This document shows positions 27,275 through 64,000 of a stretch of DNA of 64,000 nucleotides, one piece after another. The stretch comes from Cyanophora paradoxa CCMP329 (lineage: Eukaryota > Plantae > Glaucophyta). Below the pieces are notes generated by a model that searched no databases, was not told the DNA's origin, and saw nothing but the letters and a program-made list of their open reading frames with translations. The number at the start of each line of letters is the position of its first letter. Position 1 is the first letter of the stretch. Where the stretch lies: positions 186,001 through 250,000 of the forward strand of contig QPMI01000495.1 of assembly GCA_004431415.1 (NCBI GenBank). The letters run 5' to 3'. Both the position numbers and the translations under genes were made by a program.

Positions 27275-29049
27275 CCCCGCCGCCCCCGCCACCCCCGCCC
27301 CCGCCGGCGCCGGGCCGAACGCTCTGCGCCCGTTCTCTCTTTTGCCCTCCTCGCGCCCTCGCCCTCGCGGCGCGCGTGACCGGCCGCGATGCAGAGTGTG
27401 AGATATCGACGCATGTACGGAAGTGAAATGTAAAGCAGTGGGAGAAACTTCGCGGCCAGCTCGAGCGTCGTTGGTATTGCTACTGGCCACCGGAACAAGA
27501 GATCCGGAGCTCGGCCCCTATAAAGCTAGAGATTATCGTTAACGTTCCTTTCCCCCCCCCCCCCCCCCCCCCCATCCCCTCCGAATCCCCATCCACCCCC
27601 ATGCATGCGCCGCGGTGCCAATTTGATCCAGTCCAGTCCAGGGACTCTTCGAATATCAATTCGAATTGAGGCCCTGATAGAATGTTCAATTAATATTACG
27701 AATACTATCTTAGCTGACTCAGCGACATATAGAAATACAGATAGCCTAGTAGGCCATATATACATATATAGCTACATGAATTCGAAAGCTAAATATTAAT
27801 AGATATCGATGTTTCAGAATGTCGTAGCCTTTCAATGAAGAGAATTCGAATTTGAAGCACCGTACGCGTGGCACGCCTAGATCAGCGATTTCCGCTGGTC
27901 CCACTGAAGCTATCTGCAGCTTATCATCAGATGAGATGTAGAGCTCCAAAGCGACAGCCTGGAAACGAAAGTCTAGTGCTACGGTGGCCATATAGCTATG
28001 TGCATAAAGGCGAGATTAGGGGCTGCTGCCTAGCCTACTTAAACGACGCAACTCCTATATATCGTATTTTACGGATCACTCGGATTCGACCTCCATCCGA
28101 TGATCGAACTGGAACCATCGACTCCCATGGCCACGACAGCGACCTAGGGCCTATGAACAAAATCCAAAAGCCGCAAAATAGCACGAGTCCAGCGTCACGG
28201 CACGTGAACGGGGGCTCGGAGAGCGAAATTGAAAGCACTCGGATTTGAAACGCGCGATGCCCACGTGTCCTAGACTCCTAGCTGCACAATCCACGCAGGT
28301 GCTTGGTTCGGAAGGCCGGCATGTACACGCATGCGAAACGGAACAATGGACGTCAGAGTCCACCGAAAAAACTAGGAGAAGCAGGGCATAATAATGCCCG
28401 ATCCGGATGCAACCGAGAATAAAATAGGCACGCTATAATACACTGATTCAGTCGGCTGTAATACACTGTTGCGTTACTACTGGACTCCAGGAGGTGAAAA
28501 CAAAGCAGCGAACAACCAAGCAACTGGTTATAGTACTGCAGCGCATAAATATGCAAATGTGATTCTGGTGAGATCAAGAGGATCGAAAACACATAGACAA
28601 TGCCCGCGTTTTATCCCTCGGCTAAGTTTAATTATTATTTGTTTATATTTTACCTATATTTCTTGCATATTTAACAAGATCCGTGCTCCTGCGGAGCACT
28701 AAGTACGGCGAAGCCTCGCGGCCGCCCTCGCGCGCGCACGGCTGTCACAGTAGGCGTAGCGCACTGCAGCTGGCCAGCGGCCCGGCCGAACAGCTGGTTG
28801 GCTGGAAGCTGGCGGCCAGAGGCCTGGCTGGCCAGCTAGAGAGGAATGTAATTAATTAGGAGAAGGAATTAATAATTAGGGGAAGAGTTGGACTGGCTTG
28901 CTTTTAACAGGTAAAGCATATTGAGAGGAGAATAAATATATAATATTTGAGGCCCGGGAGGGGCGAGGTTCTCGCGATCGCAGCCAGGCGCATGCACAGA
29001 GCTTGCGAATCGCTTAAAAAGAAACTCGAATGCATATAGTATCAATGTG

Positions 29050-31350
29050 CAGGGTTGCGGAGGCGAGGGCGCGAGGAAAAACCTGCAGGTCCATGCAGGA
29101 TCGAATTTTCGGGGTCGGCTGGGTTCTCGCGCCCTGTCGCGCCCTTGGAGCTTGCGCTACGCTTTGAAAAGCTCTCAAATGAATATTGTAGCGATGCCCA
29201 TGCATGAGGATGCGAGGGCGCGCGGAAAGCTGTGCAGGTCCGTGAAGGATCGAATTTTCGGGGTCGGCTGGGTCCCCGCGGCCCGGCGCATCTGTAAAGC
29301 GTGCGGAATGCTTTGTCTACATCTCAAATGCGTATGCTATTGTTCCGCGCATGCGCCGCGGCGTGGGCGCGCGGAAAGATGTCCGGGTCCGTGCAGGATC
29401 GAATTTTTGCCGTCGGCTGGGTTCTCGTGCTCTTTCGTGTCTTCGAAGCTTGTGGAAGGCTTTGATAAAATCTCAAATGAATATTGTGGCGATGCGCATG
29501 CGCGAGAATGCGAGGGCGCGCGGAAAGATGTTCAGGTCCGTACAGGATCGAATTTTCGGGGTCGGCTGGGTCCTCGCGGCCTGGTGCATTTAGAGACCGT
29601 GCGGAAGTCTTCTTCTACATCTTAAATGCTTATGCTATTGTTCCGCGCATGCGCCGCAGCGTGGGCGCGCGGAAAGATGGCCGGGCCCGTGCAGGATCGA
29701 ATTTTTGCCGTCGGCTGGGTTCTCGTGCTCTTTCGCGTCTTCGAAGTCTGTGGAAGGCTTTGATAAAATCTCAACTGAATATTGTGGCGATGCGCATGCG
29801 CGAGGACGCGAGGGCGCGCGGAAAGATGTGCAGGTCCGTGAAGGATCGAATTTTCGGGGTCGGCTGGGTCCCCGCGGGGTCTGTAGAGGATCGAATTTTC
29901 GGGGTGGGCTGGGTCCCCGCGGCCCCGCGCATCGGCAAAGCGTGCGGAAGGCTTTGTCTACATCTCAGATGCTTATGCTATTGTTCCGCGCATGCGCCGC
30001 GCGTGGGCGCGCGGAAAGATGTCCGGGGCTGTGCAGGATCGAATTTTTGCCGTCGCGCGATCGGGTACCTTCCTGCGCTGTTCGGCATCCGAAAAGCGGA
30101 TTTCGGGGGTGCGCAGGCCCTGCTATGTCTATGCGCGCCAGTGCGCATCGATTGCGCGCGTCGCGGACCGGGCCGGACCGGCTGGATCAAATTTTCGGCG
30201 GAGTCTTCGCACTGGAGTGTCGAGGGCGCCCGAAATCGAGCTTGCGGCGATGCGCTCGCCCTCGCGCGGCATTCTGTATCGTTCTGGGGCGTCCCTGGCG
30301 CGATTTCGTCGCGGGACCGGGCGGGACCGGGTTCCACGTTCTGACTTGGACTGCATTTGTCGGAGGTTAAGTACCGGAATTGATTCAGAGGGAAATTCGA
30401 TTTTCGCGGGACGCCTACGGGAGAGCGGTCGTCTTAGGGGAGCCACGACGCTAAAAATGGATGTAGAGAGGTTTGTGGGGGTTCGGGTGGGTGTGTTACC
30501 AGCAGCAATCGCGTCCGTGTCGAGGCAGAATTAATAATTCTGGCTCGAGGGAGTGCGACCAAGAGCTATGCGATACAGGCGCGATGCGGAGGGCGGTCAA
30601 GACGTGCCGGAGATTCTCAAGTGCTGGTACATGCCTGCGGGGCCGCGCTTCTGCGAGGGCGCGCGGAAAGACGTGCAGGTCCGTCCAGGATCGAATTTTC
30701 GGGGTCGGCTGGGTCCTCGCGGCCCGGCACATCCGTAAACTGTGCGGAAGTCTTCTTCTACATCTTAAATGCTTATGCTATCGTTCCGCGCGTGCGCCGC
30801 GGCGTGGGCGCGCGGAAAGATGTCCGGGGCCGTGTGGGATCGAATTTTTGCCGTCGGGTACCTTCCTGCGCTGTTCCGGCTCCGAAAAGCGGATTTCGGG
30901 GGTGCGCAGGCCGTGCTATGTCTATACGCGCCAGTACGCATCGATTGCGCGCGTCGCGGGACCGGCCGGAACCGGGAGGATCAAATTTCGGCGTACTGTT
31001 CGGACTGCAGCGTCGAGGGCGCCCGAAATCGAGCTTGCGGCGATGCGCTCGCCCTCGCGCGGCATTCTGTATCGTTCTGGGGCGTCCCTGGCGCGATTTC
31101 GTCGCGGGACCGGGCGGGACCGGGTTCCACGTGCACGTTCTGACTTGGACTGCATTTGTCGGAGGTTAAGTAACGGAATTGATCCAGAGGGAAATTCGAA
31201 ATTCGCGCGACGTGCACGGGAGAGCGGTCGTCTTAGGGGAGCCAGGACGCTAAAAATGGATCTAGAGGGGTCTGTGGGGGTTCGGGCAGCTGTGTAATGT
31301 CCATCAATCGCGTCTGTGTCGAGGCAGAATTAATAATTCTGTCTCGAGGG
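29050..31350. repeat. Complex tandem repeat array (~150-bp subunits, ~300-bp dimers, plus a ~700-bp duplication)
   Basis: Recurrent GGATCGAATTTT(C/T)G(G/C)...GTCGGCTGGGT core at ~29095, 29245, 29395, 29545, 29690, 29840, 30030, 30685 and 30835. Block ~29820-30550 is repeated at ~30660-31350. Confidence 0.9.
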
Positions 31351-31525
31351 AATGTGACACGGAAATTATTTGGCACGGGGGATCTTGAGTGGAAAAAAAG
31401 GTTAAAAAAGGAATTTCGGTCGGCGGTTTTTGGGTTTGAGAAAGAGGCTTCGCCTGACGTTAATTTATGTGTAATTTATCCTTTATTCTTGTCTTTTATG
31501 TGCGTATTTTATATAAATTACTAAC

Positions 31526-32135: not shown

Positions 32136-32204
32136 ACAAGCAGGGGGGCAAGCCCCCCCGCACCCCCCCATTAACTGATGATCGATATCATGACCGTCGG
32201 ACAT
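32136..32204 (+). repeat. Dispersed repeat copy 1 (probable transposon terminus with G/C hairpin)
   Basis: ACAAGCAGGGGGGCAAGCCCCCCCGCACCCCCCCATT.ACTGATGA...TCGGACAT; a similar copy is at 34648-34718. Confidence 0.7.
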
Positions 32205-34214: not shown

Positions 34215-34650
34215 ATGCTGGAAATTATAAATGCTATCCATCATAATGGAAGATTAATTGGAAATTCACCCACTTATTCTGATATGCGGGGTGTCGGTTA
34301 TTTCAGGGATAAACCTCATCAAATAGTCGTTAGACATGTCGATGATCGGTTTTACATTGCGAAAGCCATCGAGCCTATGGGAAATATTGAATTCCTTGTT
34401 AGACAACTCCGTTATGAGGAAACAGAGGATGCTTATGTAGAAATTCTCGATTTCTGTCAACATGTTCGATGCACTCAATATAAGGTATCTGATGTCATGG
34501 ATGTAATTGTAAGAGATTACGGTAATCAGATGCAACCACGTTATTATTTTAAAGTAAATCGTGATCTCTCGGTTTATCATCGCAAGTTTGAAGGGCATAA
34601 CTTAAAGTTAACTACCCGTGCATCGGTTCGTAAATTCTTAAAAGCCAACA
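34215..34650 (+). pseudogene. AT-rich intronless virus-like hypothetical ORF, truncated by a repeat insertion
   Basis: MLEIINAIHHNG...RKFLKAN; abrupt shift to low GC; the frame runs directly into the 34648 repeat. Confidence 0.4.
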
Positions 34651-34718
34651 AGCAGGGGGGCAAGCCCCCCCGCACCCCCCCATTTACTGATGACCATGCC
34701 ATGATGACTGTCGGACAT
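34648..34718 (+). repeat. Dispersed repeat copy 2 (probable transposon terminus)
   Basis: Direct copy of 32136-32204. Confidence 0.7.
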
Positions 34719-36674: not shown

Positions 36675-36794
36675 TCAATACCTAACGCTAAAAACTCCAA
36701 CTCAAATGAATTATCGATACCGTTCATATCAACAAGATCACCGTAATAATCGCAAAACTCTACGGTTAACTCATTAATCACTAAATTACGATCG

Positions 36795-37129
36795 ATCTGG
36801 TAGACCTTGATTGGTGGGTCGACCGTCCCAGATCAAACGAAGTTTGGAGCCAGTCTTCTTCGGGACCACGGACAAGGAGCACACAATGTTCACCTCGTGC
36901 TGTTGGACTTCACGAATGGCCCCGGTGCGCAAGAGTTTCTGAATTTCCGTCCGCACAAAATCCCTGTGATCCTCGGCTGCAGACTTGTGATTACGCCGAT
37001 GCTCCGGTGGCAGATTGCGGGCCCCAGTCAGCGGGAAACCGTCACGTATCCATGACAGCACCACATAGTTGGCACCAATCTCCTTCCACTGGGACCAGGC
37101 CTCACGGATGCAGGACGCCACAAAAGAAC
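36795..37129 (-). pseudogene. DIRS-type reverse transcriptase, N-terminal fragment
   Basis: WKEIGANYVVLSWIRDGFPL...FVRTEIQKLLRTGAIREV...CSLSVVPKKTGSKLRLIWDGRPTNQGL; clearly homologous to the RT at 63376-64000. Confidence 0.85.
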
Positions 37130-37313: not shown

Positions 37314-37442
37314 ATCTTCACTGCTTCGCGCGAAAGAAGACTGAAGGTTGTACCCCTAACAATCATTATATAGAATCAAGGCTGCTTACGGAGTGGCAGG
37401 CATACAAAGTCATATGCTACGCGTTCGCTCGCATATTCAGTA
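37314..37442 (-). repeat. Internal A repeat (A2) of element 1; with adjacent sequence forms a long hairpin at 37371-37472
   Basis: Identical to 39398-39526. Stems CAAGGCTGCTT/AAGCAGCCTTG, GTGGCAGGCATAC/GTATGCCTGCCAC and ATATGC/GCATAT. Confidence 0.9.
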
Positions 37443-38263
37443 GTATGCCTGCCACAAGCAGCCTTGCTTCTAAGCAATTCTAAGCCAAGTCTGATCATGA
37501 AGTTTTTAATAGTGAGCGTGTCACAGGTACGAATTTGTCACAACACCTGACGTTCACCTCCACGGTGGATGCGCGAAGTTCTTGAATGAAGGCACATCAC
37601 AGCATGCACAGCACACACATATGGACTCATGCAAGTACACAACTTGTTCTCTTGAATGCTTCAAAACTTGTCCAGCATGCACACCTCTGGATGAATGCGC
37701 CAACCTGCGGAACAGAATAGAAAATTGGGAGACACACCTGGATACCAAGAGATGATTTCCTCCACACCTGCGATACCAAATGATTAGATCTGAGCACCCA
37801 GCGCGCGATAGCGACACACGAGATGGCCGTTGCTGGCCAGGAACTCGGCAACTCGACCGCAGCCTGATGTGACCTGGGACGAGAAGAGGTCAGGCTGTTG
37901 GGGATTGGCTGGGGCTCGCACCAGGTTGGAGTCATCCAGGTGGCACTTATGGCCCACAAAGTTGTGATGCTCAAAGCTTATGCAAAATTCGTAGTTACAA
38001 GGCCTTGTAGACTATGGCAAATTTGAAACGATCACAAGGTCATGCACATTGCAATTGCCAAGCTAGTGTTTACCACAGACCCATCACCACAAATGCAATG
38101 CAAGCTCAAACACACATAAGAAAGCCCAGATTTATTCCTTCATGGCACACACACAGCACAGCACAGCTACGAGCACATGCACATGCCAAGTCTGGGGCCA
38201 CACGAAAACGAAAAAACCTAGCACTCTACAGCTGCGCCCGAAAGGCTGGGCACAGGAAGCCGC

Positions 38264-39399
38264 CTACTTCTTCTCGCGCCAATCCGGGCGCGGCGGGTTG
38301 GTGCAATCCTTCACATGGTGGCCGTGCTGGTTGCACCTAAAGCAAGCGCCGCCGTTCCGCTGGGCGGTGGGCGCCTGCTCGCGTTCGACGCGCTGCCGCT
38401 GCGGGGGCCGATAGCTAGACGGCTGGCGCTCAGCTGGTGCATACGAATTACCGGCGCCGACGCCAGCCACACGAAGCGCGTACGCCATCGACGCGGTCTG
38501 CGCGCGGTGCTCCTCCGGCACAGCTGCGAGCGCCTCGGCTGTCTTATCGCCGCCTTTGTCGCGGATATCTATCTTCTTCTTAAGCTCCTCGAGCTGCTTC
38601 AAAGACGCTTTGAGGGTTGCTGCACAGGCGACACACGAGAGGAGCCCCTTGAGCTGGAAACGCAGCTGTATCAGCTGGAACGCAAACTCCCGAAGCCAGG
38701 TATTCTTAAGCTGCATTGCTTCATGCTGTTCGCGCTGCTGCTCCTGAGCGATTTGATGCTGGTGCTCACGGATGGACTCTACCCCTCGGTCTATGCCTTG
38801 CTGAATCTGCTTCTTAATGTACTCATTAAGCTCACCGGCAGGGCTGTTGTGGCGTTGACGACGGGAACCGGGCCGCGGCGGTGCCGAGTGTGCCGGCTGG
38901 GTCCTGGCTGGTCGGGAACCGGCACCTCGAGATTCGGGAACATCTGTGCGGCAAGAGCTTCCTCTCGTGTGGCTGCACCGCCGAACTGCTCACGACGCTG
39001 CACGCCGGCAATCACATCCTCCTCGTCCTCGGAAAATGGCTCCGGATCCGGAACGCCGTCACTGGTGCGGTTTTCGACTGCTGGGGCGGCTGGCGCCTTG
39101 CGCTTGTTGCTGGTTGACTGACGGCCACTTGGCGTTGGAGTAGGCGCCGAACCGTTGTCCTCGCCGCCGGAGTCCGCCGCCTCGGTCACACGCGTGGAAC
39201 GGCGAGCTCGTGGCTGGGCGGATGCGGTCGGCCGCGGACGGGCTGTCTTGCGGGAGCCCGTTGCGGAAGACTTGCCCTTCTTGTTCGACCCCGCCTCCGC
39301 GCAGGCCGCCAAGAGGCTGAAAACGACGACGACGAGAACAAGTGTGACCACCAGAGGGGCCCAGCTAGGGCCCCTCCCACGACGAGCCACGCGACACAT
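38264..39399 (-). CDS. gag: Gag-like ORF1 of element 1 (N-terminal signal peptide, coiled coil, CCHC zinc knuckle; one frameshift at ~38835)
   Basis: MCRVARRGRGPSWAPLVVTLVLVVVVFSLLAACAEA; CFRCNQHGHHVKDC. Confidence 0.75.
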
Positions 39400-39526
39400 C
39401 TTCACTGCTTCGCGCGAAAGAAGACTGAAGGTTGTACCCCTAACAATCATTATATAGAATCAAGGCTGCTTACGGAGTGGCAGGCATACAAAGTCATATG
39501 CTACGCGTTCGCTCGCATATTCAGTA
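39398..39526 (-). repeat. Terminal A repeat (A1) of element 1
   Basis: Starts TACTGAATATGCGAG at the element boundary and ends inside the gag ATG. Confidence 0.9.
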
Positions 39527-40514
39527 TTATCGATACCGTTCATATCAACAAGATCACCGTAATAATCGCAAAACTCTACGGTTAACTCATTAATCACTAA
39601 ATTACGATCGTTTATTTTTATGTATTCTCCATGCTCTCCGCTATGGTATACATACTTTCCGATGTCCTGACTTAATTGTAAACGCAATATTGCGCCTTGA
39701 GTCAGTGTGACACACTAGTACTGCAGCTGACAGACTAGTGACACACTGACAGTACACATGCTCTGTACTTCTACTAAGTAGTAAGTACTAGTACGGTAGT
39801 AGTTGTACCGCCGCTACCGCGGTCCGCCGGCGCCACCGTCCGCGGGCCGGGGAGTCCGGCGGGGACCGGGCCGGGGTAACTCACTAAGTTAGCTAAGTTA
39901 GCTTCCGCCTAATATAAGCAGCCTAATTTTAAAGCACGGCCTTTTTAACTTCACATTACTAAGTTACCGTTAGTGCGCATTCTCTCGAGTTTTTTAGAAA
40001 TGGTTTTTCGGTTTTTCTGACTCTTTCGAGTTGGAGTTTGCTCTACAATTGCTTGGAGTCTTTGACAGCAATCCCGGAGCTAACTTGGAGTTTGATAGAC
40101 AAACCATTCGCAAGTAAGAATCGCAACAACTTGCAGTTGGATGAACTTGGATCGACCCCTTTCGAATTCCGAAGTTTGTAAGTTGATGCAATGATAGCTT
40201 ATAATCGTTGAACGTTTAAGGTGGAGCGCCAAGTTCTTTTTGGCAAGTTGCCAGTGGGAGGAACTTGGAGAAGTTGGAGGCAACTTCATCGATATCAGGC
40301 AAGTTGGACTCTCAGAGTCTGTTGCCAGACTGTTGGATGCTTCATGATCAGCTTTAAGGTTATAATTAACTTGGAGCACATCATGGCATGGGCCATGGCC
40401 AATATTGGAGCAAGCCTTGTCATGATCATTGATGCCTTGAACTTCCAAACTTGGAGGATATCGATGGAGGCCGAAATCCGGATCCCGAAGTCCGGATCAT
40501 CGACCGGATACCGT

Positions 40515-40745
40515 ATAGTTGTTATACGAGGAACGTAGTATAACGTACTTCGGACAGCGTGAATAATGTATATTGTTACATAAATTTCGCACTCTTTGTT
40601 GCTTCGCAACAAGTACTTCTTGGGTACTTGTTGCACCTGCAACAAGTCCTACGAGCTTCCTAAGAGCTGCAGCAGTGAGCTATCGCTGCAGCTGCTGCAG
40701 CTTCTCTTCAGAGTTGCTTGATAGCAGCTTCGCTTCTTGCTCCCA
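40515..40745 (+). repeat. Terminal A repeat (A1) of element 2
   Basis: Near-identical to 63026-63256 (two 1-nt indels); ends at the A of the gag ATG. Confidence 0.9.
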
Positions 40746-41806
40746 TGGCAGCCCTAGCGCGCCCCCGCGGGCGCCTCCAGCTCTCCCGTTTCGTCCTAAT
40801 TGTGTGTCTCCTTGCGCTCCTCGTTTGCCCGGTCGCAAATGGCGCCCGGGGTGCGAAGAGAGCCAAAACCGCGACTCCCTCTCCCAATCCGCCCGATCCG
40901 ACTGTGGCGCCCTCTGCTGGCCCCAGTAGCCCACCCCCTGTTCCTCCAACGCCCACCCCTGAGGCGCCGGCCCCGGAGCCCGGCCCGCCAGTTATCACTC
41001 CTTCAGGCTCGAATATTTGCATCGGAACGCATGGCCCAACAGTGCCAACCCCATCCCAGCAGATTGCAGACCAAACCGTAGAGGCGTTCAATCAGCGTTT
41101 CGCAGCCATTGAACATTACCTCGGCGAAGTGATTGCAGCTCGTACCATAGGTACTGCCACCGCCAATCCAGCCCCGATTCCAACTCCGCCCATTTCGTCG
41201 GTCCCACTTGTCGATTTGACATCGAACAATGGCGGTGAAGGATCATCTTCGGGCAACACTGCGCGTGAGCGTGCTGCACGTACACGTGAGCCCCTTACTG
41301 AGCGCGAACGCCAACGTTTCCACTATAATATTACCCGTTGGAATAACCCTCTAAACAAAGAATTTGCTTTGGACACTCTCGATAATATAGCGTTAGCCGA
41401 GGCCCGTGATTATTCTGCTCTTTATATCGCACTTAGAGACCAACTCAAAAAGATCCAACGCATCAATCAGCTAGGCCTTGATCGTGCTCTTAGACTGCAA
41501 AATGTAAACCAGGCTACTGATGATTTTCAGGAGCGCCAACTTTTGTTAACTGAACAAATGTATCAGCAGCAGTTGCAGCAGTTTACGCAGAATACTGTCA
41601 CAGGCATGCCGTATGGTCGCTCACAGAATTTCGCTGCTCGCCCTCCCGGCCCTCGTCTGGCGGCCTCTGGCCCTACTCGCCCACGGGCTTGCTATCATTG
41701 TCACGATCCATCCCATATGCGTAATGTCTGTCCTGCTTTCCGTGCAGCTTGCCAGAACTGCCCTCCTGGCACTCGCCCGACTCCTCTGCCGACTCCAAAC
41801 TCGTAA
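40745..41806 (+). CDS. gag: Gag-like ORF1 of element 2 (signal peptide, Pro-rich linker, CCHC zinc knuckle)
   Basis: MAALARPRGRLQLSRFVLIVCLLALLVCPVANGA; CYHCHDPSHMRNVC; intact reading frame. Confidence 0.8.
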   Translation: MAALARPRGRLQLSRFVLIVCLLALLVCPVANGARGAKRAKTATPSPNPPDPTVAPSAGPSSPPPVPPTPTPEAPAPEPGPPVITPSGSNICIGTHGPTVPTPSQQIADQTVEAFNQRFAAIEHYLGEVIAARTIGTATANPAPIPTPPISSVPLVDLTSNNGGEGSSSGNTARERAARTREPLTERERQRFHYNITRWNNPLNKEFALDTLDNIALAEARDYSALYIALRDQLKKIQRINQLGLDRALRLQNVNQATDDFQERQLLLTEQMYQQQLQQFTQNTVTGMPYGRSQNFAARPPGPRLAASGPTRPRACYHCHDPSHMRNVCPAFRAACQNCPPGTRPTPLPTPNS

Positions 41807-42352: not shown

Positions 42353-42984
42353 TGACCCTCGCCGGGACGATCGCTGGCCTGACGGCGGTTCGACAACGAC
42401 CCGCCGCCACCTGGCGTGAACCCGCGGGAGGAGAGTGCGTCATCCTCGACGGACGTGCTAGACTACACGACCGCGTGCCCGCTGGACGCGCCGACCGGCC
42501 GGAGCACGACCTAACTGACGGAGCTGACTTCCTTGTCCCTTCGCCAAACTTGTCGCGCGGCGTGCCTTGCTCTACGCAGGACACGTGCGGGAACGAACAC
42601 TCGCTGCAGGCAGTGACCCGTGTCTTGCGGCTCGCTGCCCCAGTGCAGGAGAGAGTGAGGCGAAATCACTCGACCTTTACGTGTAGCGACCCGTGACTTG
42701 CGGCTCGTTACGCCTAAAGGGCAACGTGTATCGGTGCGCGATCTGCACTGCACGTTGCTGTCGCTGTCGTGTCGTACTCTCGTCGCGATCGTCGTGCTCG
42801 TGCACGCGCGCTGAGAGCTCCGCAGCTGTTGACAACACTGTCAGCAGCTCGGCCAACGACACGCAGTGACTGCTCGACTGCCCTCGCCCTCGTAGTCGGC
42901 CACACGGCGGCCGCGATCGCGACGCAGTACGTTACGGACACACCGGCATACGCCGCGTACGTGACACGCAGGACGTAAACGAGC

Positions 42985-43650
42985 AACCTGTACGGATCGC
43001 ACCCGCTCACGTAGCGGCTGAAATCTGTACGTCGATCTTCAGAGCACCCCGCTCAGAAGGTCACCGTCAACCCCGTCGTCAACTTGTACGGATCGCACCC
43101 GCTCACGTAGCGGCTGAAATCTGTACGTCGATCTTCAGAGCACCCCGCTCAGAAGATCACCGTCAACCCCGTCGTCAACTTGTACGGATCGCACCCGCTC
43201 ACGTAGCGGCTGAAATCTGTACGTCGATCTTCCGAGCACCCCGCTCAGAAGGCCACCGTCAACCCCCTCGTCAACTTGTACGGATCGCACCCGCTCACGT
43301 AGCGGCTGAGATCTGTGCGTCGTCGATCTTCAGAGCACCTCAGCTCAGAAGATCATCAACCCCGTCATCTATTTTTACAGATCACACCCGCTCACGTAGC
43401 GGCTGAGATCTGTGCGTCGTCGATCTTCAGAGCACCTCAGCTCAGAAGATCATCCACCCCGTCATCTATTTTTACAGATCACACCCGCTCACGTAGCGGC
43501 TGAGATCTGTGCGTCGTCGATCTTCAGAGCACCCCGCTCAGAAGATCATCCTCGACTTCGTCGCCGGTCTACGGAGCACCTCAGCTCTCAGGACCATCAC
43601 CACCGTACATCTTACTTCAGATCACACCCGCTCACGCAGCGGCTGCACTC
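42985..43650 (+). repeat. 96-bp tandem repeat (~6-7 copies) in the Gypsy 5' leader
   Basis: Units start at 42985, 43081, 43177 and 43273, then diverge; core GATCGCACCCGCTCACGTAGCGGCTGA. Confidence 0.92.
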
Positions 43651-48600: not shown

Positions 48601-51600
48601 ATCCGACGCCTGTGGGCCCGGACGGCCCCTTGGACCGGAGAGTAACAACTCGAGCCGAGGAGACGTTCAATGCAATCATCATGGAAGCGCTCGCTTGGTG
48701 GCCCAAGAGCCAGCTCGCCTGCAAGCATGGCTATGCCAATGTTTACGACCGCTTCATCAACCTTAACATGGAGCCGTTCGACGTACGTGCGTACAGAGTC
48801 CACGCCAACACAGAATGGTCCAGCACGCGACCCAACCAGCGGTTCAACTACGGGACCCTACGCACGGCAACTCGAACTCCAACCAGGACCGGGACACGCG
48901 CAGCGCACCCCCGACACCGGCTCACGGCCCATTGGTCAGCCTCACGACGCAACCACAGCAGCACTGGCCTGAGGAAGCTCGCAATCCCCCGCGGCTGTTG
49001 AAGCCAACGACGGTCATCTCGTACCAGTCTCACGAGGCCGGAGTGGTAGACAGCCGTGGCTGCACCATTCCTTACTTCGGCATCGGCGAGCACGGATCCG
49101 CCTACGAGTATTTCAATCCAATCCGAGTCACAGCCATCTTGCGCCGAATTTACGACCCGGACGAGCAGCGGAAGTATAAGGAAGCCATGAAGATCATCCC
49201 TGAGTCATATGACTTCATTGCAGCCCAGCTGGAGACCAGTACAACCTGGCCCCCCTCATGGACATACCCGACTGACGACGACAAGCGTAACTTTATCGAT
49301 CTTATGTACGAGCGGGAACGACGCCCGAGCCGAGCGCCTCAACGACCAGCTGGAACCAAACCCCGAACGGCGCCTGGATCCGTGGATCTGACGGCGAGCG
49401 TGAACACGGCGTACGACGCCGATTACGCCTTGGGTGAGGGCAAAGGTCCTTACATGGCGGCGGCGCTTACTGGTTACGCTCGAGCACGGGGACGCGAAGC
49501 GAACAGGACCGCCTCGAGCGCTACGCGGAAATACAAGCCACGACAAGTCCGGGTACAGACCATCGCGAACAAGATGGAAGATACACCACCGACGTCGTCA
49601 TCTGAGACCCCGGAACGGACACCTTCACCCCCGTTCAGGGCGACCTCGGCCGACCCCCAAGCCCCAACTCTGGACGATCCCGGGAGTGGTGTCCTCAGCC
49701 CCAGCGACAGCGTGGCCCTTGGTTATGGCACTACGAATCCCTCCAGTCTCATTACCGTCGCCCCGGCCACGGCCGGCGCGCCGCAAACTGAGACGAATGC
49801 TACCAACGTAACAATCAACCCGAGCCCTGCATCTCCGACCCTTACGACGCCCCTGGAAGCCGCCCCGGCCACGGCTGGCGTGGCTCAACCCGGCGTTATA
49901 GCTTCAGAGCAAGCGACTCCGGACATGACCATAACTGTCAGGGAGCAGACTTTGACACTGCCAACTGACAACGAATCGACCACGACCCCCGCAACTACCG
50001 CCCCGGCCACGGCCGGCGAGGTAGACAGGTCGAACGTTGAGCCCACGGACACGCCCAGCATGACAAACCCCGCCGATCACAGCCCTACGGCAAGGCCGGA
50101 TGACTTCATCGTTGAGTCCGAAAGCCCTCCAGGACCCGACTGGATTGAATGCCCAGGGGATTGCCGTCCCCGACTGTGGGCTCGCCCACACTCGCGCGCG
50201 TGGATATATGCACGTGAATACTGGCGATCCTGGAACGAGGAGGAGCCAACGGCAGAGGAAGATGGCTCGGGACCAATTCACATTTCCCGGACTTACCCTA
50301 CTGTCACTGAGGATCCCCAGCGTTACATCCAAGTCGGCGACATTCCCGTCCCGATTCCGGAACCTGAACCGCCACTTCCAGTCCCGCCGGAGACCGGCGC
50401 AATCGTGAGAACCACACACTTGGGCGAGGTCACTGCTGCAGTTTCACAGCGCCTCGGAGACTGTGGGGTCATACCAAGCACAATGCCCGGCTACGCAGAG
50501 GCAGCGGCTGCGGTCGACAATCCCAACCTGTTTGCAACCTATCGCAAGTACACGCCATGGAATGCAAGTACGGACCCGTCCAAGACCGGCCTCTACCTCA
50601 CAAACATTTCCACGCTGCCTGACGGACTCACGGAGCTGAACCCGGCTAACCGGCACGTCCTCGACAGACTCGTCACGTACGTCGATGTCGAGGAGCAATC
50701 AGCGATTTTGCTCAAACATACCGCCCATCTCCGCGCTGTCGCTTATGCGATCATGAGAATTGCGGGCACAGCCGACACTACGGATAGCTTGGAAGAGACG
50801 CTGCGTCACGCATCTGTCCTCGAGCTGCTGGGCCTTGATGCACAACAAGCAATAACCCTGACGACTTCACGGCAAGGAATATTGCCTTGGCTCTTCGACG
50901 TCATGATCTCGTACGGCCGAAGCATGCGGGCACAATTCCCTACTTACTTCGAACCGCACGGGGACTACTATGCGCCTTTCCCCACTCTCGCCGACGCGCT
51001 GACGGTCCGCATGACGGCACTGGAACGCTTAATCCTCGAGTCGCACCTGCCGCCGCCCTTCGACGACGAATTCGCGCCTTACCCCACGGCGACACCTCCA
51101 GCGCTCGATCGAGACATCGCCCTCGAGATGCGGGTGACAGCCCTGGCCAACGCAATTCACATTGCAGCGGCTGGAGCACGCATCTACTTCCACTCGAAGC
51201 CTCGGGAGTTGGAACGGCATCACTCATGGCGCAGCCCTTGGCTTCGCTGTTCGGATCCGTTCTCGGCAAAGCCAAATAGGCTGCTGTGGCCGACAAGCCC
51301 AGACTTCTACTTCACAATGGGAGTCGAAATGGTGGAGTACATCACGCGCGTGCTCAACCTGCCCTTCGGAGGCCACTTCGCGAATAGCCCCAACAGCTGG
51401 CTGGCTACCGTCGACCGGTACCTTGACCGGACACAGACGCCCCCGGAACAGGGGACCTTGGACGTTCCACGGAAGCCCTTCGAGCTCCACGGTGTATTAC
51501 TCGACGAGTACAAACTAGCGGTGATTGAATGTAACGAGCGACGCCTCGACTACTCCGAAGACCCGCTTTCTCCACTCTGGAGAGGTCTTCAGGCGTTCCG

Positions 51601-54600
51601 GACCGGTGCCGAGAACTCCGGCAACGTGTTCGTGACCCATCTCTCCGCGAGGACAGCCTTAGGGCGTGCCCGCGAGCTCGGCGACGTAGCAGCATTCCGA
51701 CAGGCCCTGCGGCTCCATCTGGACCGTTACCCGGAGAGAGTACATGAGCGCGTCGGTGCTCGTAGCTACCCGAGCAGCTTCGAGCTCAGCCGCGTGGAAC
51801 CGGGACCTGACCTGCAACTGTCACTGGTTGAAGGCTACCCTGAGGGCCCGTACACCATCCGTATTCAACATCAGGAGGCGGTACTCCTCTCCAACCCCAC
51901 GTTGTGGCACGCCACTGTTCTCGACGCATTGTATTGGGCGTTGAAGCGTAAATACAACGGGGACAAATGGACGGATGCGGAGGATTGGCAGGCTCAGTGC
52001 CTGGCATACGGAATGACAAACCGCCTTCGACTGATCGACTCCCAGCCGAACACCCTAGTCCGGCTCTCCCTCGTCCGGGCGATCATGTTCGGGGCCGACA
52101 AGATTCTCGGAATTTTCCAGTACTGGAACAAGTCGAAGGAGAACCTACTTGCGGATCTTACACCCTGCGTACCGAACGATTACGTGAATCCAAGCACGGC
52201 AACCATCGACATTATGCAGGCGTACAACGTCCCATTTCCCCCGATACGTCAGAGGATCACGGAGTACGGCCTCAATTGGGACACCCGCTTCCTCCTGCGT
52301 TGGGCAGAACTGACCACGCTCCGAATCCACGATTCCATGTTCTTTACGGCCGACGACGAGACCACACTGCGGAGTCACCCCCTCATGTTCTCAGGACGGA
52401 AACGACCGCCCCCGGCACCGGTGCAGCAACCACGTAGCACAACTTCAGGCTCAACTGCTAAACGCGTGGGCCTGAAAAAGGGCCGCAAGACAGTAATATC
52501 GGAAGACGAGGCTGGTGACGATTGGTTTTACGAAACTGTCGACCTCAGCCGGAACGCCCGGGCCATATTCGGTACCCGATATTACTACAAGTTCTTCGGT
52601 GCCGACATCATCGAGAACGGCTACGTTACCGACAAGTTCGAACGCGTCGGATGGTGGGGCGACCCCAGGAACGCATCCACCGCAAGCAATCATACTCAAG
52701 TGCGGGGACTCGACGACAGCGTCGATACTCAGTGGGCATTTGAGGCGGGGCACTCGGGCCTCCAGCACGGGAGGGGACAACACAACGACTTCCGCTTGTT
52801 CACGCTGTCTTACCACAAGGATCTGCCGGCACTCGAACGTCTGGAGGACCCCACTATCCCCGAGGATAGTACGGTGCAACTCTACGACGTGACACGCTCA
52901 GACACGCGCAACGAAGTATACACGATCAACAAACAGCCGCTCGCATTCCGAGGCGTCGAATTCTTTCTCAGTACTCTCAGCTCCGCGATGGCCGAGAACA
53001 TGAGATACACTCCGTGGTCTGCCGTCCTCGTGGCAGAAATGTGCAGTGCCTCGCAACCTCGGTCCTCGTTCACGCGTGACTTGACGGCATTGGAGGAGTA
53101 CGTGAATACGAAGCCTGAATGGGAACACCCACTGGCAGAGAGCCAAATTCAGTACTTCATGCACGGCGACACGAACATGGACAAGTTCATGCGGAAGCTT
53201 CCAGAGTTCAGACCGATCCACGCGCTTAACCAGCTTCGTTGGCGCGGAGCACTACAGGCGCTCGACGGCGTGGTACGCCATCGGGCACGCAATCGTTCCA
53301 ACCCGTACCTGCACGGGGTGCAGACCGTGACAGATGACGGCAATACCCGCAAGAACCGTTGCGAGATCAAGTTTACCACCTTGACAATCGCTCCCGCCAA
53401 TGAGCACAACCCGTTGAATGAGCTCGGTAACTACCTCACAGCGTTCCGAAGCCCACTCGAGCGGCCTCAGGGACATGAAATGGCTCCCCCGCTTGGCAAC
53501 GGCGGACCCCATGCTGGCACGTTCCACGAGTTCAACTCCCCGACGATACTGAGCGACACCCTGGAAGTCTTCGCCAACGGCGGCCCGCGAATTTACACAA
53601 AGACGCGGACCAGGGACACCCAGGCTGTCGTTCACGTGTTCGATGCCAACAACCGTGACACTTGGCTCCAAATCGCCCGTTCGAACAGGCCACAACGGCC
53701 CGCGGACCAGCCTGCATACTTCGACTACAATCGCATACCAATTCTGCTTGAGGAGACGATCCTACCCGGCGGCGTCTGGAAGACCATCGAGAGGCCTACT
53801 AGGCCGACGGAGGGTGCATTCATCCACGTTATCCCCTTCAAGCCGGAAGTACATCACTGGGTCCACCACTTCGCACATCACGTAGCAGCTTCAATCCGTT
53901 TGTACACGGCGTTCCCGTCGAAACAGATGCCAATCCACGACGGCCTGCTGGAGATTCTCGACGAATACGTGACTTCGAATGCGAGCCTACTACACTTCCG
54001 TGTCGACGACGACGGCAACATGACCGTGTCTCAGGAACTGCAAGACTGGTACGCCCGGGATTTTGGCACGGCAACACCACCACCCGGCGCCATGTTTGCA
54101 ACGGCCTTCATGGCACTACTAGTCACGGCGATTACAACGCAACTCGCGGCAGTTGTCCGCCACGGGGCCCTCGGCAATGCCGGGCGCGCCTCCACAACAG
54201 CCAAGGAGACATGGCAACGCTACGAAGATCGCCAGTCGCAGCATGCACACTTTCCCGCTGCCTTCGACCTCCCTGTCAACGTCATCGAGATGTTTGGACA
54301 CGACGGAACCATGGTCGGCAACAGGGGCATGGACAACCTCGGCATGGGCGTGAGCCAATACACGTTCAACAGGAACGAGTTCGAACGGTCCTGGCGTCAT
54401 TACGAACAGCACGTGGGTCCGGAGGTACTCCTACAGTACAATGAGATCCACGCGTCCGAGGAAGATTCGATTCCCGAATTGTTTCTCCTTGACTACGGCG
54501 CAATACTGTTCTCCGACGACCTCGTGGAGCATCGTACGCGCTGGATAACGCTGGCTTACAACGCTTCCGGCACGTCACGGGACGACCGCATCACCATGAC

Positions 54601-56250
54601 AGCTGAACTGGCACCCCCCTTGCGGTACAGCGGAGGTCTCACAGAAGCCGACGGAGCAAATCCTAGCCGTTTCGGGCCCCACCTCTACATCGGTGACGAC
54701 GAGGACGGAGCTCCTCCCGGACCATTTGAGGGCGTCGGGTTGTCCATCAACCCGCTGCGCGGCGCTCTACAAGTCGACCCCCGATACCCGCGGACGTACC
54801 TGTACGACCAGGCGACGGGACGATGGAGCAGCCCAGGCTGGTACGACGGCAGAACGCGGCCGCCGCGAATCCAAGTCTAGCCGGTACGAAGCCGAGGCCG
54901 AAGCGCATGAAGGAGACAGACCTCCCGAACGACGGCGAGAAGGAGCACAAATGGGCCCTGTGGATCACACCGCGAACAATTGACGGTGCTCGGGTCGGCG
55001 GCAAGACGCCCGTCGTGATTGACAGGGGTGACACGGCTCGGGCACTTCGCCTTTGTCGCTTCGACGTCGCACCCGAGTTCAAGCCCCGTCTGCCCCAAAC
55101 AGGAGTTCACCGCGTTCGCTTCCGGCGCGTCGCCCGAACACCACCGGTAGCGGGCAGCGACAGCGACACCACAAGCACGACTTCTCGAACTTCGGCACTA
55201 GCTCCACGCGGAAGTAAAGGAGCCCTCCCGCCTACCTTCTACTTCCGTGCACACTACCGTGACCTCTCCCAAACGCCTGTGGACACCTCGTACACGGAGT
55301 ACAGCTGGGAACGCTTCGCGGCACACGGTCAGTCTCACGAGTCCATCCCCGTACTCTGGCCAGACCTCTGGGACGAAGACGGAACGAACTTCAGGACTGA
55401 ATACGATTTGTATGACTGGAGCGCATTCCGAACACCGCATCAGCTCAATGCTGACGCCCTCGTGTCATTGGCTGAGGATCTGCGAGCACGGCCGCCTGAC
55501 CTCTCCAACTCGGCGGGAGCCTCCTTGGACGTCGTGCGCACACGCGCCCTGTTCACTCGCATGGCGTTCATCATGAACACTTTGGGGTTCACCGCGTGGG
55601 ACGCGGTCAAACACGCCTCGCTCGTCTCCATCCATCGGGACCGCGCTCGATTTTACTTCAACTCGATCCTGCAGGGCGACACCCGCCTACCTCACCAGTG
55701 GAAGACGCTGGTCAGCTACTTGCGCGAGGGCCTCAGTCGCCACGGCCATCATTACGCGGAATACGACACGCTCGTCGACTTCGATCCCAACCCTGACTCG
55801 GATGAGAGCATCGCTTACATCTGGTTTGGCCGGAAGACCAGCGTACACGCCCAATACCTCACAACATCCCCGAGACGAGGACTCGGATTCAGCCGGCAGG
55901 ACCACAGCACTCGTCCTAGCAGCGGCCCGGTGCCGTCCAACAGCACCCGCCTGATTCCAAACCGACCTCGAACCTTCGCGGCGGTACATGTTTCAACAGA
56001 GCACATGAATCGGTCTCCAAGGTGGAGAAGACTGCCCGCATCCGGGTTGCCCGCCTCCCACCTGACGCCATCTCATCGTCACGACCTTTGACGACGCCAG
56101 TGGAACGGAGCTACCAGACAGCACTTCGTGTCCGCACGGCAAGAATGCTCGGTTGGCTGGGTGACATCGTGTCTCCTAACGACATACCTACAGCCGAGGA
56201 TACGGCAATTGGACGTCGAATCGCTCAGCTGACAAAACCCGACCGGACAA
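45600..56250 (+). CDS. ~3,500-aa uncharacterised polyprotein segment between Gag and protease
   Basis: Overlapping same-strand ORFs 45748-48036, 47955-49001, 48815-54880 (2021 aa), 54823-56091 and 56022-56807, linkable by single frameshifts; no introns; no domain recognised. Confidence 0.75.
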
Positions 56251-62579: not shown

Positions 62580-63025
62580 TACATGTCGCAGCTCTGCCCT
62601 TGTGGCATCTGCATGTCTTGTTTTTTGCTTTGAAAATCGCTATGGCGTGCACTTACATCGACATTATTGATTGCAAATTGTCAGGACAGCTCTGCCTCGC
62701 GTGGCATTGTTGCTGTATTTCTTTCAGTGCACGGCACTAGTGCATACTCCTCGCCGGAGATGGAGATTCGGTCGCCATTTTCTTTCCCTTGCGCAGTTCA
62801 AGCATCTGGAGTTCAGGCACGCCTCCCCCATAAATCGCTCGTGCACTGACTGGCGACCGAACGCATCGATGGCATTATACATACGCATTTTACATATATG
62901 TGTGCTTCTGTGTGCCGTTAGAGCCTTGCACTCGTCTGCAGGCTCTCGGCCTTCGCTCTTTTGCTCTTCATGGCAATTGTACAAGTAGTACCTCAATTGC
63001 AATATACGAAATGAGCGCTGTCCGA

Positions 63026-63256
63026 ATAGTTGTTATACGAGGAACGTAGTATAACGTACTTCGGACAGCGTGAATAATGTATAATTGTTACATAAATTTC
63101 GCACTCTTTGTTGCTTCGCAACAAGTACTTCTTGGGTACTTGTTGCACCTGCAACAAGTCCTACGAGCTTCCTAAGAGCTGCAGCAGTGAGCTATCGCTG
63201 CAGCTGCTGCAGCTTCTCTTCAGATTGCTTGATAGCAGCTTCGCTTCTTGCTCCCA
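63026..63256 (+). repeat. Internal A repeat (A2) of element 2; with upstream sequence forms a hairpin at ~63000-63087
   Basis: Stems CGCTGTCCGAA/TTCGGACAGCG and GTTATAC/GTATAAC; apex GAGGAACGTA. Confidence 0.9.
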
Positions 63257-63375
63257 CCCAACCCTCCCTAATATATGGATGCTGTTCTGCTGTCTATATA
63301 ATTCCCTCCCTTGCGTGCGGCCTCGAGCTGCATTCTCGTGCACTATTAATTGCGTGCTGTTGTTTTTTCTGTCAG

Positions 63376-64000
63376 GTTTTACTGCTCGCTGTCTCGGAAG
63401 TGCGGATGCCTTGGCGGCATGGCGTGCAATCGGAACAAGTGATTACATCCTTTCATGGCTTCAGAACGGCTACCCTCTTGCTGGCGTCGAGCATCTGCTC
63501 CTAGTGTACATTACAATGCTGGTCAATCTCAGCGCCCTCGTGAGAGTACTTTCATTCGGGCAGAAATTCAGAAGCTGCTCGGTACCGGCGCTATTCGGGT
63601 GGCCCCCAAGCCCCCGAAAATTGTTTGCTCGCTATTTACGGTTCCAAAGAAGACTGGTGATAAGCTCAGACTGATTTGGGATGGCCGCCCAACAAATCGA
63701 GGTCTTCCTCCTGTCCCTTTTCGCTATGAAAATATGCGCGAGGTCATCGCCTTGCTGCGACCTGGCTGGTTTATGTTTACTATCGACCTCGAGTCGGGAT
63801 ATCATCATGTACCGGTAGACCCGCAATATTTCTCGTACCTGGGCTTCCAGTACGATAGTACTTTCTTCGAATACACCGTTTTACCCTTCGGGCTCTCACA
63901 TGCCCCATATGCATTCACCAAGATCATACGTCAGGTCATTAAATTTCTCCGCGCACACGGTATTACCGTGGTATCGTATGTAGATGATTTCTGGTTTGCG
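63376..64000 (+). CDS. DIRS-type reverse transcriptase (partial; frameshift at ~63500)
   Basis: VPKKTGDKLRLIWDGRPTN...TIDLESGYHHV...VLPFGLSHAPYAFTK...SYVDDF. Confidence 0.92.

Follow-up and report, generated by a model that had tools for sequence, protein, structure and literature searches.

PAT-like retrotransposons (DIRS order) carry a conserved, covarying hairpin at the internal junction where the end of repeat B meets the start of repeat A. The fold is kept from a glaucophyte (Cyanophora) to a chordate (Branchiostoma), and it is close to certain that the hairpin is functional and tied to the crossover. From the comparative analysis described below, the hairpin is probably a folded single-stranded DNA which resembles the attC sites of integrons and acts as donor recombination site for the tyrosine recombinase (YR) of these elements.

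Two PAT-like elements in Cyanophora paradoxa

PAT-like DIRS elements are defined by split direct repeats together with reverse transcriptase, RNase H and methyltransferase (RT/RH/MT) and YR (PMC4157794). Self-comparison of the window, i.e. the whole 64-kb stretch of DNA analysed here, revealed two such elements arranged back to back. Their features are as follows.

Element 1 and its target:
39526-39610, target DNA adjoining element 1 on its 5' side (duplicate at 36710-36794)
39398-39526, minus strand, repeat A1 (5' end at 39526, 1-nt ambiguity)
38264-39399, minus strand, gag with CCHC knuckle (frameshift near 38840 in this copy)
37443-37503, minus strand, repeat B1 (start given by the loose contig end at 37503)
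37314-37442, minus strand, repeat A2 (self-comparison)
36795-37121, minus strand, start of pol (110 codons, truncated at 36793-36795)
36710-36794, exact 85-bp duplicate of the target DNA (self-comparison)

Element 2:
40516-40745, plus strand, repeat A1 (self-comparison and Logan unitig)
40718-41806, plus strand, gag-like ORF with a Cys/His knuckle-like motif
42055-62568, plus strand, Gypsy-like LTR retrotransposon inside element 2 (20.5 kb, outside the hairpin system)
63027-63256, plus strand, repeat A2 (self-comparison)
63413-64000, plus strand, DIRS-type RT (frameshift near 63500, runs off the window)

The order in element 2 is A1, gag-like ORF, Gypsy-like insertion, B1, A2 and RT. Repeat B could be demonstrated for the element 1 family, where a contig enters at 37503 from unrelated sequence; B2 is absent from the truncated element 1 and lies outside the window for element 2. 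In both elements the B/A junction sits between gag and pol. This position distinguishes them from known PAT-like DIRS elements (PAT, kangaroo, TOC3; PMC4157794), with which they share the A1..B1A2..B2 arrangement, the zinc-knuckle gag, RT/RH and, to judge from relatives, YR; MT and the lack of a target duplication may be further common features.

The presence of a DIRS-type RT in the window was confirmed by Pfam (RVT_1), and in a quick RT tree element 2 groups beside animal split-repeat elements. The gag-like ORF of element 2 (40718-41806) gave no match in Pfam. A EukProt entry that exactly matches the element 1 protein encoded at 38264-38716 (minus strand) belongs to a 90% cluster made up entirely of Cyanophora paradoxa sequences. 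At position 38840 most other copies have one more G, and 378-aa versions are present in EukProt; to judge from these sequences, either the frameshift is peculiar to this copy or the assembly is wrong here.

The gag ORFs of both elements open with a hydrophobic, signal-peptide-like stretch (39399-39320 and 40745-40830). Just 5' of pol, a conserved GC-rich block is followed by a pyrimidine run and CAG (63290-63380, and positions 1-130 of both L003 and L004), which suggests that pol is reached by splicing. The Gypsy-like element (42055-62568) has 298-bp LTRs that do not end in the usual CA, and it is flanked by an imperfect 6-bp duplication. It contains tandem repeats of 96-97 nt at 42984-43563 and a 2021-aa ORF (48815-54880) with no Pfam match. 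The window also contains a tandem array with a 149-nt unit (28978-31358) and two copies of a short G-run/C-run hairpin (32136-32204 and 34648-34718), which may be the ends of another element.

A hairpin at the B/A junction

The B/A junction lies between 37443 and 37442 in element 1 and between 63026 and 63027 in element 2. It is embedded in a hairpin with the following parts.

37371-37472, minus strand, junction hairpin of element 1 (outer stem of about 29 bp, 6x6 bubble, 6-bp inner stem, apex)
37443-37472, minus strand, outer 5' arm of element 1, the last 30 nt of B1
37437-37442, minus strand, cut-strand bubble of element 1, the first 6 nt of A2 (putative recombinase overlap region)
37431-37436 paired with 37412-37417, minus strand, inner stem of element 1
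37418-37430, minus strand, apex of element 1 (closing pair C-G, followed by G.A)
37371-37405, minus strand, outer 3' arm of element 1
about 63014-63071, plus strand, junction hairpin of element 2 (apex 63039-63048)

The letters quoted for the two hairpins in the initial annotation are present at their places, and both hairpins were confirmed by folding as DNA: element 1 reached -36.1 kcal/mol (z -9.8, 0/200 shuffles) and element 2 (63014-63071) -17.0 (z -5.8). The integrated 5' ends folded no better than shuffled sequences (z -0.3 and +0.1), in agreement with the earlier proposal that the full hairpin can form only at the B/A junction. The two-part apex pattern occurs only four times in the 64 kb, namely in the two A copies of each element. 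Between element 1 and element 2, both sides have changed in two of six inner and four of six outer pairs.

The start of L001, a third Cyanophora-like family, lies inside the apex, with CGTAG kept and a matching 3' arm. The Logan contigs of L003, L004 and L165 break inside the repeats and yielded no additional complete Cyanophora junction. A search of viral contigs with the Cyanophora apex DNA pattern gave 73 matches, which we read as chance because none had an inner stem longer than 4 bp. Protein-based scans of viral and GTDB contigs gave no relatives.

The same fold in animal elements

Relatives were fetched by RT similarity alone. Complete split-repeat elements were found on four long contigs: L002, L005 and L006 (ENA assemblies, apparently animal) and L087 (Branchiostoma). 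The junction is located at the pol/YR boundary in L005 and after YR in L002 and L006. Eighty metagenome loci were grouped in families; in eight families flank divergence among copies fixed the start of A and, except in F8, also the end of B. Families F7 and F10 and most singletons, having no independent junction, were left out of the statistics. The final set consists of 14 junctions fixed by repeats or flank divergence, two from the window and 12 from animal PAT-like elements; they come from related families, most animal loci from a few metagenome series, and counts over them are not independent.

A descriptor comprising two arms plus a bubble scored higher than nearly all of 250 decoy positions per locus in 13 of the 14 junctions (p <= 0.008 each; the descriptor was written after seeing the data, which makes its p values optimistic). 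The exception is F8 (p 0.23), where mismatches suggest a decayed copy. The same fold is present in 11 of the 12 animal PAT-like junctions. Applied to the minus strand, the descriptor fails.

Arm 1 of the fold is the end of B, in which pairing continues right up to the cut. The bubble (4x3) lies 3' of the cut, where about four bases at the start of A, with the consensus (A/T)TGT, face three to four bases; it is followed by arm 2 and the apex. The cut strand carries one extra base in 11 junctions of the 14.

Of 201 stem pairs, 188 are Watson-Crick. The inner 6 bp are paired to 96%, compared with 53% when arms are permuted among families, and the outer stem to 93% compared with 47% (0/5000 in either case); the permuted arms are swapped among related families, and relatedness remains in this control. 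Most columns, anchored on apex and cut, display three or four Watson-Crick types. The original observation that stem sequences differ while pairing is kept has thus become strong covariation. MAFFT with RNAalifold recovered the two stems in the animal rows and misaligned the Cyanophora rows, for which reason anchored columns were used. The broad alignment A1 was too divergent for a pattern search.

The inner stem ends in C-G followed by G.A in all 14 junctions, with TAG on the 3' side in 12. The wider apex is lineage-specific: GAG/CGTA in Cyanophora, G-N-TTGA/GAATTA in most animal families and G-N-TA/TTTA in others. The conservation initially claimed for the GAG/CGTA apex therefore applies to the Cyanophora families and not to the animal ones.

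Two topologies were found. In type I (nine junctions) the apex lies in A after the cut, at 12 nt in Cyanophora, 14 nt in six junctions and 16 nt in one. In type II (five junctions) it lies in B, 8-9 nt before the cut, and A pairs with the upstream part of B. The distance of 12 nt from element end to apex G, to which attention had been drawn in the window, is exact in both Cyanophora elements but is not a universal ruler. The conserved (A/T)TGT..TT motif at the start of A occurs in both topologies. In a quick tree, used descriptively only, four type II families form one subclade nested among type I, and L087 stands separately.

Types I and II have the same core and differ in the side that is capped. 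As the core is kept in both, we take it to be a duplex interrupted by a bubble, with the cut at the bubble's 5' edge. This pattern argues against the apex being a ribozyme core or a ruler and would fit a tyrosine-recombinase site. The dyad symmetry between the arms is greatest for a spacer of 5-6 nt, at a value within the permutation range (p 0.13).

Element ends and target sites

The identity of A1 and A2 stops at 39526 in element 1 and at 40515 in element 2, with a 1-nt ambiguity each. The end of element 2 was placed at 40516 because a Logan unitig of its repeat, with about 14x single-copy depth, spans exactly 40516-40745. In a second flank of the element 1 family, which ends in ATAA, the joint has the same position. 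These limits support the ends first assigned to the elements (39526 and 40516), at the TA which starts the internal loop.

Element 1 has one precise end. In the assembled sequence the other end meets, at 2 nt of microhomology, a second copy of the 85 bp that lie upstream of the insertion site, and the target is itself a multi-copy repeat. Such a pattern, from a single copy in a repetitive target, would be compatible with exchange of one strand finished by repair. For the animal families, flank comparison revealed no target-site duplication. In the target flanks (28 left, 27 right) the three bases before the cut match the junction to about 55%, and the three bases after the cut to 52, 41 and 37%. 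Several families insert precisely without any shared base; the target is degenerate and A-rich, and no fixed microhomology is needed. The Branchiostoma element (L087, 6799-13850) is inserted in a 206-bp tandem repeat and has AATT at both ends.

DNA or RNA, and choice of strand

Inspection of about 19 apices by eye revealed a GNA triloop in about 10, six of them closed by C-G (e.g. GC-GAA-GC in F8), 2-nt loops in four, and no GNRA or UUCG cap. GNA triloops closed by C-G are exceptionally stable in DNA (PMC3201870). G-T pairs are few, with 14/272 on the coding (plus) strand and 4/272 on the minus strand, compared with 16% in random windows. The GNA triloops and the low number of G-T pairs moderately favour a coding strand that is folded as DNA.

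On the coding strand, types I and II alike have the cut at the bubble's 5' edge and a fully paired arm 5' of it, while on the minus strand unpaired bases would fall 5' of the cut. Tyrosine-recombinase chemistry requires a paired arm 5' of the cut, and YRs cut at the 5' edge of the bubble.

The gag region of the element 1 family (37535-39431) has deep coverage in two RNA-type runs, with low coverage over the junction and pol, and element 2 has no RNA coverage in 40400-41000. Two joints that occur only in RNA-type runs, 39431-39483 and 37443-37526, are bounded by GT..AG on the plus strand, which is the antisense strand of the element 1 genes. One donor is exactly at the B/A junction and the other joint removes part of the 3' outer arm. 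The joints possibly represent spliced antisense transcripts.

The tyrosine recombinase and a model of integration

The YR gene is known from relatives, not from inside the window. Relatives carry gag, RT/RNase H, a putative MT and YR, and an intact YR is present in the close relatives L001, L003 and L004, which have 70-74% DNA identity to pol of element 2. In the YRs of close relatives the residues R, K, HxxR, W and Y are present; these proteins are weakly Cre-like, and the stretch aligned with Cre contains no IntI-like insertion. A methyltransferase-like region after RNase H aligns, with Pfam Dam matches at E 0.037 in P0024 and 8e-5 in the animal P0029 and none in P0021. Among the candidates listed in the initial annotation, a folded single-strand substrate of a tyrosine enzyme appears to fit best, given the intact YR of relatives and the conserved, covarying junction fold.

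In the model that we propose, reverse transcription would rebuild the B/A junction, and the coding-sense DNA strand would fold into a pseudo-duplex, either as single-stranded DNA or extruded from a circle. Two YR monomers would bind the arms, and one of them would cut at the 5' edge of the bubble. Only the cut strand would be swapped with a loosely specified, A-rich target, and the resulting junction would be resolved by replication or repair, in the way of integron attC x attI and CTX phage. With an open bubble, strand exchange would be possible without target homology: a recombinase acting on ordinary duplex would need homology in the overlap, and we infer that an open bubble as in attC (PMC5027507) would relax this need. 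The apex would be a stable cap (tandem G.A pairs, GNA triloops), which may nucleate folding and mark the strand and would not measure the cut. The reaction would be one-way because the integrated ends cannot refold.

The weak points of this model are the YR without an IntI insertion (although XerCD, too, use folded strands; PMC5027507), the arm symmetry (p 0.13) and the intermediate reported for DIRS-1, which is first-strand cDNA (PMC7192593). The latter counts against the model because the model needs the coding strand to be folded.

Comparison with known systems

Integron attC sites (PMC5027507, PMC2727003) have the same imperfect two-arm hairpin with unpaired central spacer and variable terminal structure, the same pairing kept with varying sequence and, as proposed for the junctions, a crossover at the spacer edge by a tyrosine recombinase. 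The junctions differ in having no RYYYAAC/GTTRRRY core, with its crossover in AAC, and no AAC/GTT triplet; in the columns for the end of B and the start of A, conserved bases are restricted to an A at position -2 and, 3' of the cut, (A/T)TGT. Where attC has two or three extrahelical bases near L'', they show the one extra base on the cut strand (11/14) and no spaced bulge pair. Further differences from attC are the Cre-like YR without IntI insertion, the lack of a cassette array, the location in a eukaryotic retroelement, the partly conserved apex at either end of the core, the existence of the site only at the junction and the degenerate target. On this comparison, the junction site seems to work like attC, yet it is not an attC, as it has no AAC core and no IntI.

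CTX phage integrates one-way by host recombinases into a fixed dif target. Its XerCD site, named as the other case in PMC5027507, is likewise a folded single strand used as YR substrate, whereas in the present elements the YR is element-encoded and the targets are dispersed.

DIRS-1-like elements (ITR and ICR; PMC7192593) have the same presumed crossover at the circle junction, and a 3'-terminal hairpin has been noted in them. They differ by their inverted repeats with ICR, by ATT/GATT bases shared at both ends and by a different bubble geometry. In the DIRS1-like loci L088 (9981-10354) and L091 (10116-10457), the circle junction is at the base of the 3'-terminal hairpin, in a type II-like topology. 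We regard this as a lead toward a shared site across the DIRS order, not as a result.

Alternative explanations

The hairpin might instead be an RNA structure for RT priming or strand transfer, in which the 3' end of B, held by the partner arm up to its final nucleotide, would prime cDNA synthesis. It would do so by fold-back in type II and by a panhandle with A in type I, and we consider either version unlikely. Arm 1 is indeed paired exactly to the end of B in both types, G-T pairs are commoner on the coding strand (14/272 versus 4/272), and the Cyanophora apex presumably resembles a loop-E/bulged-G RNA motif. A hairpin that stops at the right end is likewise present in the DIRS1-like outgroups L088 and L091, and a 3' hairpin has been proposed as DIRS-1 primer (PMC7192593, where it is quoted from Poulter and Goodwin). 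However, priming leaves arm 2, the fixed 4x3 bubble and the conserved first bases of A in both topologies unexplained. It also needs an RNA 3' end exactly at the end of B, while deep element 1 RNA contigs stop about 90 nt short (contigs cannot prove ends), and the loops are DNA-like and G-U pairs rare.

It is improbable that the partner strand serves as a splint for circle closure, i.e. as a miniature internal complementary region which holds the ends of linear single-stranded cDNA for ligation, with YR acting on the double-stranded circle. Like the ICR of DIRS-1 (PMC7192593), the partner strand can pair with the sequence on either side of the junction, and the almost pure Watson-Crick stems would fold on either strand. 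Yet the mismatch bubble begins at the junction itself, which is poor for ligation, a junction template is already supplied by the split direct repeats, and the apex motifs suit the coding strand only.

The initial annotation had also considered an RNA motif for self-cleavage or processing; that such a motif cuts at the junction we now think very improbable. The conserved apex is purine-rich and has G.A pairs, and in Cyanophora a cut at the junction would separate gag from pol. But the apex switches sides of the cut with the core kept (3' of the cut in nine families, 5' in five, at 8-16 nt), which leaves no fixed core-to-cut geometry. An Rfam search of the junctions gave nothing at gathering level, only sub-threshold miRNA-type matches, and the ends have no target duplication that would indicate RNA-primed insertion.

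Nicking by an HUH nuclease of the IS200/IS605, Helitron or Replitron kind, the remaining candidate, is hardly credible: hairpin-defined ends without target duplication do resemble those of HUH elements, but the full and near-full relatives have RT/RH/MT and YR with no HUH gene annotated (gene tables, Pfam), and no report linking split direct repeats to HUH was found in the searchable literature.

Significance

In the searchable literature, to which the older PAT, kangaroo and Goodwin/Poulter papers do not belong, we found no description of a junction fold in DIRS, PAT-like, Ngaro or YR retrotransposons. The closest prior statement there is the 3' hairpin proposed as DIRS-1 primer, in the form in which PMC7192593 cites it. 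The same 2020 study states that YR specificity had not been examined; where the textbook model has a double-stranded circle, it found single-stranded cDNA (PMC7192593).

A conserved fold at the presumed crossover provides a defined candidate substrate (an oligonucleotide of 60-100 nt) with predicted cut position and strand and with natural mirror-image variants. The junction fold would also serve as a structural landmark when element ends are annotated, and an integrase directed by structure may become available as a tool. Our analysis suggests that PAT-like elements in lineages as distant as glaucophytes and chordates, and perhaps all members of the DIRS order, may well integrate single strands in the manner of integrons, by an element-encoded, Cre-like YR acting on a folded DNA site defined by its shape and on nearly arbitrary targets without homology. 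If true, this would explain the precise insertion by YR into unrelated targets. It would extend the principle of integrons and CTX phage to eukaryotes, and the junction would be the first eukaryotic tyrosine-recombinase site made of folded single-stranded DNA.
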